A stretch of DNA of 64,000 nucleotides from sequence record ON529853.1. One strand, 5' to 3'. The position numbers and the translations under genes were made by a program. The notes beneath the pieces were generated by a model, which saw only the letters and a program-made list of their open reading frames with translations, searched no databases and was not told the DNA's origin. Below, piece after piece: positions 16,153 to 32,598 of the stretch. Numbering within the stretch: the first letter of the stretch is position 1; each line of letters starts with the position of its first letter.

Positions 16153-16865
16153 GCCGGTGCCCCGCCGCTGTCGACGGCTGCCTGCATCCGGCGAAGGGCC
16201 TGCGGCCGGAACGGGACTTCAGCCCGCACAACATCGCGCGCGGCGTCCGACGGCTTGAACGTCACACGGGAGCCCTGGGGCGACCAAACCGCCCGCACCG
16301 GATAGACGAGACCCGCCTGAACGGCGCCGGCGTACTCGCCGTGAATGAACGGCTCGTGGGACCCGAACTCACCGTCGCGCGCCGGCAGCAGCAAGCGGGC
16401 CACCCGCCGGTTCACCGCCATCGGCTTAAAGGCCCAACAGCCCTGCGCGGCCACTTGCCGGAAGGTGTAGACTTGGTCTGGATCACCCTCCAGGGTCTTT
16501 TCGCAGGCGTAGAGGCGCCCTTTCAGGGTCACTTCCCACACAACGTCCTGACCCTGCCCATCCTGTTCGCACGGCCGCAGGCGGCCGTCGGCGACCGCCT
16601 TCACGACCAGGGCGCGCAGCGCCGGGTCCTCATGCATCGGCGTGCGGCGCGCCTCGCCCAGCCAACTATACCGCAGGGTGTCTGCGCCGCTGTCGGCGGT
16701 GATGACCAAGGCTCCGGCGCGGGCGACCGCCGCCCACATGGCGTCGTCCTCCATCTGGGCGCTATCGGGGTCCATGCCTTGCGGCGCGGGCGCAAAGCCG
16801 GCGGCGGCCGGGAGACCGGCCAGGGCGGCGAGCGCGGTGAAGACGGTGCGTCGGTTCAGATTCAT
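16149..16865 (-). CDS. putative Tat-exported protein
   Basis: MNLNRRTVFTALAALAGLPAAAG twin-arginine signal. Confidence 0.7.
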   Translation of the reverse strand: MNLNRRTVFTALAALAGLPAAAGFAPAPQGMDPDSAQMEDDAMWAAVARAGALVITADSGADTLRYSWLGEARRTPMHEDPALRALVVKAVADGRLRPCEQDGQGQDVVWEVTLKGRLYACEKTLEGDPDQVYTFRQVAAQGCWAFKPMAVNRRVARLLLPARDGEFGSHEPFIHGEYAGAVQAGLVYPVRAVWSPQGSRVTFKPSDAARDVVRAEVPFRPQALRRMQAAVDSGGAPA

Positions 16866-16871
16866 GACGTT

Positions 16872-16944
16872 GTTCTGCCGCGTCGATTTTTCTATGTCAA
16901 CCACCACGACGGCTGTTGACAGCAATCACGGCACATGCGAGAAG
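16872..16944. promoter_or_regulatory. back-to-back divergent promoters
   Basis: Minus: TTGACA-N17-CAGAAC (16900-16872); plus: TTGACA-N17-GAGAAG (16916-16944). Confidence 0.6.
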
Positions 16945-16950
16945 GACCAC

Positions 16951-17480
16951 CTCGGCGGCGCGGTCCCAGGACAGCGTCGTCGGGCGATCTCGACCGGCAC
17001 ACGGGCTTGGGAAGATCAGAGGAATAGATGGGGAACCACAGCAGCGCCTCGGCGGGCTGCCCGATCACCGCGCTATCCTTGCGGACCCCTCAGGGGATAG
17101 GCTCTGACGCCGCAAAGATGTCGAGAGGACGGACCCTGTTGAACGGCGCTGTAACGCCGCCTCGGCCGGGAGCAAGGACGACCCGCCGCACCTTCAGGTG
17201 CGGCCTCGCCCGGACCCGTATCTACCAAGATCGTAGGTGACTAAGCGATCGCCTCCCCCGTCCGGGACATGTACCGGCCGGACCGAGAGGTATTCGCGAG
17301 GCGAGCACGCCAGGGTTACGTCACCGAATCCGGCTCACCCGCCCGGAGCGGTCTCGGGGCCGTCCGTGGTTCCCCTTATCGGGTCCGGCGTTTCGTCAGG
17401 CCGGGTTCAGGATTTATCTGCGGACAATCAGCCTCATACCCCAAACCCCCGTCGGCTCGCGCCGGCGGGGGTCTCTTCTT
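16951..17480 (+). ncRNA. candidate ~530-nt structured RNA or long leader
   Basis: Promoter upstream, terminator at 3' end, many hairpins, 10-bp long-range pairing 17030-17039/17366-17375. Confidence 0.45.
17445..17480 (+). terminator. intrinsic terminator / attenuator
   Basis: acccccgtcggc-tcgc-gccggcgggggt + ctcttctt. Confidence 0.7.
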
Positions 17481-17488
17481 GAGGCCCC

Positions 17489-17707
17489 ATGCCGTACCAG
17501 ATCAGAATCACCGCCGCCGATTGCGAAACCCTCTCGGGCCAGACAGGCCTGAAGGGCATGATCGCCGGCCTGCGGGTCATGAAGACCTGGGCTGAGACGC
17601 ACACGCCGGGATGGGCCTATATCGCAGGGCTTCAGCGGTTCCAATTCCAGACAGCGGACGACCTGGACCGGTTCGAGGCGACGTTCAAGCGCGCGCCGGA
17701 GGCCTGA
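17489..17707 (+). CDS. hypothetical protein
   Basis: GAGG RBS, 72 aa, high GC3. Confidence 0.7.
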   Translation: MPYQIRITAADCETLSGQTGLKGMIAGLRVMKTWAETHTPGWAYIAGLQRFQFQTADDLDRFEATFKRAPEA

Positions 17708-17819
17708 CGAGTCTTCAAGGCTGTCACAGGCTCAGGCCTGGAGTTGCCGGGTCTCGCAATTATCAGGCCTGATTTTCCTGACGTTTCCTGCGTCGTATCC
17801 CAACAATTTGTTAAGATCG

Positions 17820-17990
17820 CCGAGCGCGCCTCCAGGCGGACTCGCTGCGCGTGGACCTGGCGGAGGCTTCCCTGCCGCCGGGGGGGTTGGCGGGGCCTCG
17901 CGGCCGGAGCGTAATCGGGGGGCGTCATGCGCTCGCACAGGGAAGTGTCCTGCCAAGGACCCCAGGAACATGGCATAGGCGCGCGCAAAG
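17820..17990 (+). ncRNA. candidate structured RNA (multibranch)
   Basis: gcctcc/ggaggc stem; cttccctg/cagggaag closing three hairpins; no credible ORF. Confidence 0.4.
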
Positions 17991-18025
17991 GAAAAGCCCC
18001 GCCGGCGAACCGACGGGGCTTTTCC
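17990..18025 (-). terminator. intrinsic terminator (possibly bidirectional)
   Basis: Minus: ggaaaagccccgtcgg-ttcg-ccggcggggcttttcc then ttt. Confidence 0.85.
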
Positions 18026-18233
18026 ACAAGGCCTGACGACCTCGCTCGATTCCTCTTGGCCCGAAGGCTCATCCCGCTGACGCGTGGACCCCTTGCGGGG
18101 CGGGCGGACGCTATTGCCCCAAGGGGCTCAACCGATCTGTCGTCCAGAAACAGGGTGAGACCTCGGCGGCCGCACGAGGTCTCGGGCGTCCTCAAGCCGG
18201 ATTTCCGATCCTCGTACTGACCGGCTATTGAAC
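17990..18233 (-). ncRNA. candidate ~245-nt structured sRNA
   Basis: Bounded by near-consensus promoter and terminator; UUCG/GCAA tetraloops; 9-bp hairpin 18157-18183; no credible ORF. Confidence 0.6.
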
Positions 18234-18239
18234 AGGCGG

Positions 18240-18268
18240 AGTATGGCTCAGCTTGTCAGAAAAGTCAA
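18240..18268 (-). promoter_or_regulatory. sigma70-type promoter
   Basis: TTGACT-N17-CATACT; -35 contains stop of 18265..18612. Confidence 0.8.
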
Positions 18269-18612
18269 GCCTTCGCGACGGCGCAAGCCATGGCCGTGTA
18301 GCGTCCCCCGCTGTCGCGGAAACCCTCGACGAAGATGTATCGGACGCCGTCCGCGTTTTGGAATTCATAGACGGCGCAGTGATCGCCGGTGAACACCCGT
18401 TTGAGTCCGACCGCCTGGCGTTCCTTGACGGCCTTGTCAGTCGCGATCTGGCGGCGCTCTTCTGAGGTCGTCGGCCGGGTCTGGTTGGGACCCACCTCGA
18501 CCGTGGATGGGGCAGTCTCGACCGGCGGAGCGGGGCTCTGCGGCGGCGCGTTGCAGGCGGCGGTCGTCAGCAGCAGGGCGGCGGCGGCGAGGATGAGTTT
18601 GGTCTTGGTCAT
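18265..18612 (-). CDS. lipoprotein
   Basis: MTKTKLILAAAALLLTTAA-C lipobox. Confidence 0.8.
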   Translation of the reverse strand: MTKTKLILAAAALLLTTAACNAPPQSPAPPVETAPSTVEVGPNQTRPTTSEERRQIATDKAVKERQAVGLKRVFTGDHCAVYEFQNADGVRYIFVEGFRDSGGRYTAMACAVAKA

Positions 18613-30820: not shown

Positions 30821-31446
30821 GCGCACGCGCGCCATTCAGCGTGCTCGCGCAGGATCGCGGCGACTTCCCGTTCCTGCGGGGTTTCCACATAGAGGGGCTC
30901 GCTTCGCCGGCGCTCGACCCAGGACAGAGGCGGCTGGTAGGCCGCCAACGCCTTGATGAAGAAGGGCTCGATCTCGGCCCACTCCATGCAGCCGTCCAGA
31001 GGGTGGACGCTGGTGCGGCGATGCTCGGCGTGCGGATGCTTGTTGATGCCGGCGTCGATGGCGCCGTCGCGACTATGCGGGTGCAGGCCGATGCGGACGC
31101 GGGCGCCGCGATACCGGGCGTAGAAGACCGTGCCGTCGGACAGCCGCCCTTCCCACTGACTGGGGCAGACCCGACAGGTCTGGACGACCTCGGTGAACAC
31201 GTCGGGGTCCAGGCGGAAGTCACGCACGTCGAAGCGAGTCCAACTGAAGCCGAGGTGCTTGTGGATCGCCCGGCTGCGGCGGCCGGGCCGGACCTGGGCG
31301 GTCATCGAGTGGAACTGGGCGAAGACCGAGCGCGCCAGCACGGCGTCCGGCGCATTGCGCCAGCCCCGCGAAGGTTGGTTGCGGATCAGCGCCCGCTGCC
31401 CCCGTAGATGCGGGATCGGGCCGACATAAGTGGCGACAATGATCAT
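30817..31446 (-). CDS. hypothetical protein (two-domain)
   Basis: TCRVCPSQWEG...FYARYR motif. Confidence 0.7.
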   Translation of the reverse strand: MIIVATYVGPIPHLRGQRALIRNQPSRGWRNAPDAVLARSVFAQFHSMTAQVRPGRRSRAIHKHLGFSWTRFDVRDFRLDPDVFTEVVQTCRVCPSQWEGRLSDGTVFYARYRGARVRIGLHPHSRDGAIDAGINKHPHAEHRRTSVHPLDGCMEWAEIEPFFIKALAAYQPPLSWVERRRSEPLYVETPQEREVAAILREHAEWRACA

Positions 31447-31943
31447 GACTTGGCCTTCAACTGGCGTTCGACGCTGGGCGGCACGAGCCAGGACATGTCT
31501 TCACCGATGCGGGCCAGTTCACGGGCCATGCTGGAGGAGACGTGCAGGAAGTCCGACTGGCAGATCAGATAGACCATCGGCAGGTCGGGGGCGATGCGCT
31601 CCATGACGCCGTGAATGCCGAACTCGTCGTTGAAGTCGCTGGCCTGGCGGAAAGCCCTCACGAGGTGGGACGCTCCCACGGATCGGGCGGCGGCCGCCAG
31701 GCTGCCTTCGAAGGCAAGCGTAAAGATGCGTGACGCGTCCTCGGGGAACTGCGCCTTGCACGCCTCGTAGACCATAAAGGTCCGTTCTTTGGGATCGAAC
31801 AGCCCCTGTTTGGCGGCGTTGCTGCCCACCGCCACATACAGGACGTCAAAGACCGTCAGGGCCTGCCGGATCACGTCGAGGTGCCCCCGCGTGATCGGAT
31901 CAAACGACCCGGCGTAAAAGCCGATTTTCGGTCCCTGGGTCAT
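31443..31943 (-). CDS. coaD: phosphopantetheine adenylyltransferase
   Basis: YAGSFDPITRGHLDVI, LVRAFRQASDF, VSSSMARELA. Confidence 0.9.
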   Translation of the reverse strand: MTQGPKIGFYAGSFDPITRGHLDVIRQALTVFDVLYVAVGSNAAKQGLFDPKERTFMVYEACKAQFPEDASRIFTLAFEGSLAAAARSVGASHLVRAFRQASDFNDEFGIHGVMERIAPDLPMVYLICQSDFLHVSSSMARELARIGEDMSWLVPPSVERQLKAKS

Positions 31944-32173
31944 TCGTCCGCCCAGATGTTCACCGTCTCGCCCGTCCCCCGGAAGATGGAAACATCCTCG
32001 ATCCGGTGTTTGTCGTCGTCGAGGCAGTAGCTGTCCGGCGCGTCAGGGCGCATATGCCAGGGCGTCGCCCGGCGCGCGGCTTGGATCGCTTCGCCGCGCG
32101 TCAGTCCCTTGATCAAGGAGACCTTCCCGCCTTCAGTCCGGGTGTAGAGACACCAATCCGCCACCTCGCTCAC
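31940..32173 (-). CDS. hypothetical protein
   Basis: 77 aa, coupled. Confidence 0.7.
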   Translation of the reverse strand: MSEVADWCLYTRTEGGKVSLIKGLTRGEAIQAARRATPWHMRPDAPDSYCLDDDKHRIEDVSIFRGTGETVNIWADE

Positions 32174-32598
32174 GGGTGCAGGTCCAGCGGCGCCACGGCG
32201 CGTTCGATGGCGATCTTCGGGCCGAAGATGTAGGCGCAGGTGTCCAGCGGGAACAGATGCACGACCGAGCCGTCCAGCAGCGGATAGGACGGGTCGTTGA
32301 CCACGGCGCAGGGGAAGCCCAGGCGGGTGGCGATCGCCAGCGCCTCGTTCATCTGCCGGTTGTCGCAGCCCATCGTCAGCACGGTGCCGAACCCGCGCGA
32401 CTCGGCCCAGTCCCGAAGCCAGTTCTGTTGCGTGACCGTCCAGGTCTGGCGATCCTTAAGCGCCATCTGGGTGCCGGCGTGGTGCGACTGGGCATGACCC
32501 TTGCCCGCGTTCATCGACGCCATGTCGGTGCGCATCAGCAGGTAGACGCACAGCAGTTCGGGCGCGGCGCCTTCGGGCGGCGTAGTCTGGTCGGTCAA
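32170..32598 (-). CDS. peptidyl-tRNA hydrolase PTH2-like protein
   Basis: YLLMRTDMASMNAGKGHAQSHHA...W...GTVLT...VVND matches PTH2 pattern. Confidence 0.75.
   Translation of the reverse strand: MTDQTTPPEGAAPELLCVYLLMRTDMASMNAGKGHAQSHHAGTQMALKDRQTWTVTQQNWLRDWAESRGFGTVLTMGCDNRQMNEALAIATRLGFPCAVVNDPSYPLLDGSVVHLFPLDTCAYIFGPKIAIERAVAPLDLHP

Follow-up and report, generated by a model that had tools for sequence, protein, structure and literature searches.

A conserved, modular and undescribed small RNA family in Brevundimonas phage vB_BpoS-Bambus and its relatives

The transfer RNA (tRNA) gene cluster of phage T4 also encodes RNA C and RNA D, two small RNAs that are stable and structured and have no known function, and phages lambda and P22 carry the short antisense RNAs OOP and sar, which have obvious cis targets. 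Non-coding RNAs have also been reported for the jumbo phage PA5oct (PMC7318152). The locus described here lies in a stretch of 64,000 nucleotides (nt), hereafter the window, of the 348-kb genome of Brevundimonas phage vB_BpoS-Bambus (Dolichocephalovirinae; host B. pondensis LVF1; record ON529853.1, window position = record position - 62000), and consists of a small RNA (sRNA) gene of about 245 nt on the minus strand that an earlier note, made from the sequence alone, had put forward as an undescribed phage sRNA. Comparison with related phages bore this out: the unit runs from promoter to terminator, is non-coding and conserved, carries strand-specific signatures and compensatory changes, and has no match in Rfam 15. 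It is very probable that the gene is genuine, and the sRNA represents a genuine, undescribed, narrowly distributed modular family of phage sRNAs. The reading preferred here, a stand-alone non-coding gene whose RNA acts in trans by being bound, is given a probability of roughly 55%.

Like OOP, sar and the PA5oct RNAs, the element is a short promoter-to-terminator unit without an open reading frame (ORF) in a phage genome, but it is three to four times longer than OOP and sar and has several domains, and its resemblance to sar in Rfam is limited to the terminator hairpin (18.6 bits against a threshold of 43 bits). With T4 RNA C and RNA D it shares the character of a phage-encoded structured RNA tied to tRNA biology, a Bambus RNA related to one module of the family (domain A, below) adjoining tRNA-Cys and a permuted transfer-messenger RNA (tmRNA). 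The sRNA of the window, however, is not part of the tRNA cluster and is flanked by a promoter and a terminator of its own; it is likened to the T4 RNAs by description only, and membership is not claimed. The small stable RNAs of the T4 tRNA cluster and other stand-alone phage sRNAs would be its nearest functional analogues.

GenBank annotates the window as a nearly unbroken leftward array of 'hypothetical protein' genes. Positions 16866-18264 form its largest non-coding island, in which the sole annotated coding sequence (CDS) is a plus-strand gene of 72 amino acids (aa) at 17489-17707. The sRNA locus has this CDS on one side and, on the other, the stop codon that ends the leftward CDS 18265-18612, and the next gene co-oriented with it is 1.1 kb away, past the plus-strand gene. 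Around the locus, 2.5 kb match ON529853.1 at 100% identity, and the same locus is present in four close relatives, Marchewka (96% identical here) and Domovoi, Papperlapapp and Kabachok (about 84%). The proteins that flank the sRNA occur only in these five phages and have no assigned family, and no defence-related neighbours were seen around the locus.

The promoter, the ORF-less stretch of about 245 nt, the UUCG-capped terminator with its U tract and the hairpins that the earlier note had listed were all found where it had placed them on the minus strand (Table 1). In a promoter scan TTGACT-N17-CATACT agrees with the consensus at 9 of 12 positions and is predicted to be of the sigma-70 type, and a regular-expression scan of both strands of the window returned it as the sole TTGAC-N18-20-NATANN site. 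Promoter and terminator are invariant among the close phages while their flanks diverge; even the coding sequence just upstream of the -35 hexamer varies among the five, unlike TTGACT itself. Positions 18025-17987 have the composition of an intrinsic terminator, a G+C-rich hairpin followed by a U tract, and the 3' end is predicted to fall within this tract (17995-17987), which overlaps the 3' arm of the stem. The stem is perfect on the minus strand, where its one U-G pair would be an A-C mismatch if the plus strand were transcribed, and Marchewka shows a compensatory change from C-G to U-A. A simple terminator scan left this hairpin out, which is attributed, unchecked against the criteria of the scan, to the interrupted U run. 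The hairpin is bidirectional in shape, and since a T run follows it on both strands, it probably ends both convergent units, including the plus-strand unit that comes from 17489-17707. The hairpin also resembles another one at 17445-17472 (89% over 18 nt).

Long ORFs overlap the region on both strands (17632-18195 minus, 187 aa; 17927-18220 plus, 97 aa), as would be expected of a missed protein-coding gene or a decaying pseudogene. Their frame and limits, however, differ from phage to phage, within the region the five-phage alignment shows indels of 1, 1 and 5 nt, and the 41 substituted columns are split 17/13/11 over the three phases, which amounts to no codon periodicity. No Pfam or PHROG family was found for the ORFs that overlap the sRNA, and, as read from the alignment, the mini-ORF candidates of Bambus have no start codon or are out of frame in the Domovoi group. 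Between Bambus and Domovoi the identity is 87.6% over the sRNA and 95% over its first 84 nt (the 5' third), compared with 62% in the spacer just past the terminator, 63% and 75% at the third codon positions of the two flanking CDSs, and 61% in the upstream protein. Because the sRNA is more conserved than the flanking third codon positions, the region is under selection, which is not what a pseudogene would show, and a coding explanation is scarcely credible. Paired positions are also the more constant ones, with 10.6% of paired and 24.3% of unpaired positions falling in variable columns (Fisher p = 0.008).

The CDS upstream of the promoter (18265-18612, minus strand) encodes a protein of 115 aa with an N-terminal hydrophobic stretch ending in ..LLLTTAAC, which is signal-peptide or lipobox-like, and the fast divergence of this protein between the two phage groups contrasts with the adjoining RNA.

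Two more distant phages also carry part of the RNA, in a different genomic context. A permissive BLAST search with the sRNA alone returned a 38-nt match in an unannotated gap of the phage Kikimora, and the phage Gurke has a counterpart. In both phages the unit is complete, with a promoter TTGACG-N17-TATACA, an RNA of about 200 nt and a UACG-capped terminator with a U tract. The 3' half of this RNA is homologous to window positions 18145-18040, a core of about 105 nt that makes up the 3' two-fifths of the Bambus RNA. At the start of the core, helix PC is formed by GGACG/CGUCC in the Bambus clade and by GGGGAG/CUCCCC in Kikimora and Gurke, with both partners changed in three pairs, and its inner loop A-N-AGA-Y-CGGUUG ... 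AA-N-AG is kept across the clades, with hairpin H4 as an insertion at that place in the Bambus clade. The hairpins B1, B2 and B3 come next, together with a strand, GGGGUCCACGCG, that does not vary and the tail GCGAGG.

A covariance model of the core (R1; 105 positions, 22 pairs) matches the window at 18040-18145 on the minus strand with 107.4 bits (E = 1e-24) and finds exactly one copy in each of the seven phages at 82-128 bits, compared with at most 21 bits at the other loci that were fetched. In the seven-phage alignment guided by the model 93.8% of the cells are paired and five pairs show changes on both sides; the cells of B2 that appear unpaired are an artefact of aligning a 4-nt with a 5-nt loop, and read directly B2 pairs perfectly in 7/7 phages. 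The covariation score of the core is 0.216 compared with 0.110 in shuffled alignments (0/500 reach the observed value) and at most 0.095 when the partners are slid, although the signal comes from three lineages and the shuffle control ignores their relatedness, both of which count against it. Among the five close phages alone most pairs are constant, and the covariation is not significant (55/500 shuffles reach the observed value).

The earlier note had also held that the tetraloops and G-U pairs fit the minus strand, a claim upheld by the relatives. B3 occurs as GCC-UUCG-GGC in Bambus, GCC-GUAA-GGC in the Domovoi group and GUC-GAAA-GAC in Kikimora, and the loop of B1 is GCAA, GUAA, GUGA or UCAC, Gurke having a longer stem capped by CUUG. 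The loop changes exchange one class of stable tetraloop for another (UUCG to GUAA to GAAA; GCAA to GUAA to GUGA), and these loops are special on the minus strand only. Similarly, transcription of the plus strand would turn the G-U pairs of H3/H4, B1, the terminator and the GCGAGG/CCUUGU hairpin into A-C mismatches, or C-A mismatches for both pairs of the last. In H4 one pair appears as C-G, U-G or U-A, with loops CUUG, CUGG and UUCG, and in H1, whose stem core is constant in 5/5 close phages, a change from U-U to U-G at the inner end suits the minus strand. For the minus strand the folding energy is -124.3 kcal/mol (z = -3.9 relative to dinucleotide shuffles), and the plus strand has z = -3.5; these values are nearly equal, so that folding energy alone leaves the strand undecided and the tetraloops and G-U pairs decide it.

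These observations bear on the idea that the conserved element acts as DNA, as an operator, replication origin or packaging signal, with its RNA folds incidental. Such an element would suit the position in the largest non-coding island of the window, and H2 is a perfect 9-bp inverted repeat, invariant in the five phages, that could be a protein site. The strand-specific G-U pairs and tetraloops, the helices kept by compensatory changes and the recurrence of the core in another context with its own promoter and terminator speak against it, however, as does the lack of iterons or direct repeats at the locus, and this explanation is very improbable. The sRNA of the window has the anatomy of a gene, is under purifying selection, is assigned to the minus strand, has helices backed by comparison and belongs to a family.

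Table 1. Positions of the features of the Bambus sRNA gene in the window
Feature	Position	Strand	Description
-35 hexamer TTGACT	18268-18263	minus	includes the TGA stop of the upstream CDS 18265-18612; invariant in 5/5 close phages
-10 hexamer CATACT	18245-18240	minus	17-nt spacer; hexamer and spacer length invariant in 5/5 close phages
Predicted sRNA transcript	17990-18233	minus	about 244 nt; 5' end predicted at about 18233, 7 nt after the -10 hexamer
Hairpin H1	18226-18195	minus	GCCGG/CCGGC stem; 18-nt loop with 17 positions invariant, holds CGAGG
Hairpin H2	18183-18157	minus	9-bp stem GAGACCUCG/CGAGGUCUC, loop UGCGGCCGC; invariant in five close phages, absent from Kikimora/Gurke
Helix PC	GGACG 18145-18141 with CGUCC 18110-18106	minus	encloses the conserved loop A-N-AGA-Y-CGGUUG and hairpin H4
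Hairpin H4	18127-18116	minus	GCCC-CUUG-GGGC
Domain B of the core	18040-18105	minus	hairpins B1, B2, B3 and conserved tail ending in GCGAGG
Hairpin B1	18100-18089	minus	CCCC-GCAA-GGGG
Hairpin B2	18088-18072	minus	3+3 bp, bulged A
Hairpin B3	18068-18059	minus	GCC-UUCG-GGC
Hairpin GCGAGG/CCUUGU	18026-18045	minus	two G-U pairs; loop of 8 nt in Bambus/Marchewka, 13 nt in the Domovoi group
CGAGG copies	18211-18215 (H1 loop); within 18157-18183 (H2 3' arm); 18041-18045 (3' tail)	minus	
Intrinsic terminator	18025-17990, to 17987 with the U tract	minus	16-bp stem, UUCG loop, then U tract UUUUCCUUU

The Bambus sRNA as a whole strings together short hairpins that are rich in G+C and have stable tetraloops as caps, with little unstructured sequence. 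Its local hairpins are solid, while for the global architecture several alternative pairings are available. The multibranch fold that the earlier note had drawn stood in its local hairpins and fell in its closing stem: all six pairs of gacgac/gtcgtc (18144-18139 / 18040-18035) are present only in Bambus and Marchewka, two of them being broken in Domovoi, Papperlapapp and Kabachok, and the 5' arm of this stem overlaps helix PC, which the comparison backs instead. A four-way, cloverleaf-like junction closed by GCCCRC/GUGGGU has support, including a change from G-U to A-U, in Kikimora and Gurke only; since no more than two of its pairs are left in the Bambus clade, no such junction is claimed for the window. 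A hammerhead-like appearance of GAUGA-GCC-loop-GGC was likewise discarded, the core nucleotides not being conserved in the relatives and Rfam giving no match.

The 5' halves of the RNAs are not shared between the two clades. H1 and H2 occupy this place in the Bambus clade, and Kikimora and Gurke have a different 'domain A', which BLAST and alignment show to be homologous, from the -10 hexamer onward, to an unannotated RNA of Bambus itself at about 213 kb of the record, with one pair changed from U-A to C-G. This second Bambus RNA, of about 200 nt, lies in locus L014 (record 210974-215025) at about 1997-2200, with its 3' end abutting the 5' end of tRNA-Cys; downstream come an unannotated permuted two-piece tmRNA (2364-2621; Rfam RF04321, 57.9 bits) and two tRNA-Met genes. 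The tmRNA has a predicted tag ending in ..LLAA and a promoter TTGACA-N17-TATACA. The module combinations Y+B (window), A+B (Kikimora and Gurke) and A+X (beside the tRNAs) indicate a family made of variously combined modules, and all of them have promoters of the class TTGAC-N17-(T/C)ATAC, which is thus common to the sRNA of the window, its homologs in Kikimora and Gurke and the Bambus tmRNA gene. In addition, the string CTTTGACGTAATGC precedes both the sRNA promoter of Kikimora and Gurke and the promoter of the Bambus tmRNA.

The earlier note had recognised no known RNA family, and the Rfam 15 scan of the whole window was indeed empty at gathering thresholds. With E values up to 10 it returned only terminator-like fragments of 12-25 bits, compared with thresholds of 43-70 bits, and the Kikimora and Gurke homologs had no Rfam match either. 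ARAGORN predicted no tRNA or tmRNA in the window, in the Kikimora locus L012 or in locus L013. As a positive control, Rfam detected the true permuted tmRNA of L014, and ARAGORN found the three tRNAs of that locus and missed the tmRNA. Self-BLAST of the sRNA against the window returned hairpin arms and terminator-like matches only and no paralogs, and neither the paper that described the phage nor the phiCbK genomics paper mentions such an RNA.

For the biosynthesis and action of the RNA the following pathway is proposed. The host polymerase with a sigma-70-type factor would start at TTGACT-N17-CATACT, overlapping the upstream stop codon, as presumably also for the phage tmRNA, and a stable RNA of about 245 nt would be made and end at the strong intrinsic terminator. 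The core, in which helix PC with its conserved loop is followed by B1-B3 around conserved junction strands, would serve as one module in modular phage RNAs, and the RNA may then act in trans by being bound, and not by means of a long antisense seed, as the ligand of a protein partner, a decoy, a scaffold or a component of a ribonucleoprotein. The tips vary in class and length, no variation occurs in the junctions, the bulged B2 or the PC loop, and nearly all of the RNA is structured, so that a protein-bound RNA is the most economical explanation. Given a genuine gene, protein binding is nevertheless preferred only tentatively, at somewhat less than even odds, to base-pairing or a cis role.

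As a working model, 6S RNA and CsrB/RsmZ offer the likeness of stable structured RNAs that act by being bound. The sRNA of the window is not the long bulged duplex of 6S RNA; no Rfam match to that family was obtained, and the supported structure consists of short hairpins in series and a junction. It also differs from CsrB/RsmZ, the GGA and ANGGA motifs being neither enriched (GGA 7 against 5.0 expected; ANGGA 0 against 0.8 expected) nor placed in repeated hairpin loops, and the protein sponge that the earlier note had suggested accordingly finds no support in its CsrA form. An antitoxin mimic, another of its suggestions, is disfavoured: no ToxI-like tandem repeats (unit of about 30-40 nt) were found, and 16800-18300 is without direct repeats beyond chance 16-20-mers. 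For its third suggestion, an anti-defence RNA, neither CRISPR-like repeats within the locus nor defence-related neighbours were seen.

A base-pairing regulatory sRNA, of the Hfq type or not and directed at a host or phage mRNA whose translation or stability it would alter, is an alternative to binding by a protein. Its seeds could lie in the C/U-rich linker CACCCUGUUUC, in loops that contain GAGG, or in AGAYCGGUUG, the loop of PC. Like most trans-acting sRNAs, the unit stands alone and ends in a hairpin with a U tail, and the sequence of the PC loop, a possible seed, is conserved across the clades while the PC helix covaries; GAGG, moreover, is mildly enriched in the sRNA (5 against 1.7 expected). 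No target was found in the 64-kb window, however, where the sRNA has no convincing complementarity other than to itself and to terminators, the RNA is almost wholly structured, and the 5' modules, the usual site of a seed, differ between the clades. On this balance base-pairing is unlikely.

Several points weigh against an RNA that acts in trans by being bound, beside the limits of the covariation given above. H1 and H2 show no covariation. Several alternative pairings are available, the three copies of CGAGG facing one CCUCG, and helix PC competes with a hairpin CUGUU/GAYAG. The enrichment of GAGG would fit a Shine-Dalgarno-like or base-pairing role as well, and, together with the three CGAGG facing one CCUCG, it may reflect Shine-Dalgarno-like motifs or pairings that exclude one another. 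No gene for a protein is found beside the core in both of its contexts, the neighbour in Kikimora being unrelated; nothing singles out a particular partner, and the promoter, the transcription start and the 3' end of the sRNA are predictions from the sequence.

The sRNA may also be a cis-acting RNA, either a structured 3' untranslated region (UTR) and terminator of the leftward operon or an attenuator or riboswitch-like leader that controls read-through, its downstream target being the operon that follows in Kikimora and Gurke and, in Bambus, antisense transcription across the plus-strand unit. In favour of this, the sRNA starts where a CDS of its own strand has its stop codon, and its terminator is the first to follow a run of leftward genes longer than 30 kb. 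In Kikimora and Gurke the terminator shares part of its 5' arm with the conserved tail GCGAGG, and an operon of the same orientation comes next. Riboswitches and attenuators resemble the sRNA in their multi-helix junction with invariant junction nucleotides and variable tips, typical of aptamers, followed by an intrinsic terminator. It differs from them in having no conserved downstream gene and no match to a known aptamer class. Moreover, the unit has a private near-consensus promoter that is invariant and unique in the window, in Kikimora and Gurke it follows an unrelated gene under a tmRNA-type promoter and the downstream operon has a promoter of its own, and in Bambus the next co-oriented gene lies far off, beyond the plus-strand gene. 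A cis role is therefore doubtful. In Kikimora (L012, 2600-2857) the second promoter, TTGACG-N17-TATACG, is of the same class and lies directly after the sRNA terminator, where it presumably drives the downstream operon of small genes.

A more specific form can be given to the role of the core, which might define a new class of phage RNAs as their functional centre. It might be an aptamer specific for a ligand or protein, or a small ribozyme, deployed by Brevundimonas jumbo phages as interchangeable cassettes alongside their tRNA and tmRNA set, and would lie in an 'RNA island' together with the structured RNA of about 500 nt described below. This is speculative and rather improbable.

Larger collections were scanned with exact words, so that distant members of the family may exist. 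The exact patterns for the H2 27-mer and a 25-mer of the large RNA described below had no match in IMG/VR, and the four matches of the H1-loop 18-mer all lay inside unrelated coding sequence. A domain-B pattern matched 0 times in IMG/VR, 17 times in metagenomes (JGI) and 11 times in genomes (GTDB), in every case with unrelated flanks, at most 21 bits with R1 and outside Caulobacterales; a looser form of it gave 15 loci in IMG/VR and no convincing homolog. Seven related IMG/VR contigs (L051-L057) share with domain B the succession CCGCCCGCC...CTTCATGGGGTCCACGCG and have in common an extra CCGCCCGCC and CTTCATG, and they score 15-19 bits with R1. The likeness was judged a coincidence, since the motif in these contigs looks, from the sequence, like a terminator hairpin that belongs to an oppositely oriented gene.

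The same island contains a second non-coding RNA gene, of about 500 nt, on the plus strand (window 16895-17472; about 4890-5440 in the relatives' loci L006 and L007), which has no Rfam match. Its start is marked by an inverted repeat TGTCAAC-N13-GTTGACA that contains a -35 hexamer TTGACA. The five close phages share an identical core of this RNA (16994-17128); in Kikimora and Gurke, where the RNA has another context and its own terminator, the identity of the core is 86%. Alifold gave compensatory changes at seven pairs, among them a YUCG-capped hairpin at about 17028-17067. Just before the 72-aa CDS stands a hairpin with a T tract (17445-17472). It is this RNA that invites comparison with GOLLD and ROOL, being large, conserved and structured, with compensatory changes, in a tRNA-rich phage; it differs from them in matching neither in Rfam, in being smaller than GOLLD and in having no shared motifs shown.

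The stretch 17708-17985, between the 72-aa CDS and the shared terminator, is conserved and structured as well, and 17900-17950 is 100% invariant. The consensus fold favours the plus strand (-102.8 compared with -83.5 kcal/mol on the minus strand; 5 compared with 1 compensatory pairs), which many G-U pairs also suit, and one hairpin, GGCC-GCGA-GGCC, suits the minus strand better. This stretch is probably the 3' UTR of the 72-aa gene.

Among the products annotated elsewhere in the window (31443-32598, and 48657 onward) are a pantetheine-phosphate adenylyltransferase, a peptidyl-tRNA hydrolase and a tRNA-His guanylyltransferase, which fits a phage that invests heavily in translation-related functions.

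The importance of the finding is limited for now to seven phages and one host species; all seven came from German sewage, six isolated on strain LVF1 and one on EIF1. Nevertheless, a blank 1.4-kb stretch of a GenBank record holds at least two conserved structured RNA genes, in jumbo phages that are mostly annotated with 'hypothetical proteins' and whose non-coding genes are almost unexplored. The R1 covariance model can be used to seek further members, and an sRNA family that shares its promoter class with the tmRNA offers an entry point to the RNA functions of Caulobacterales phages, be it in translation and tRNA biology, in host takeover or in the evasion of defence.

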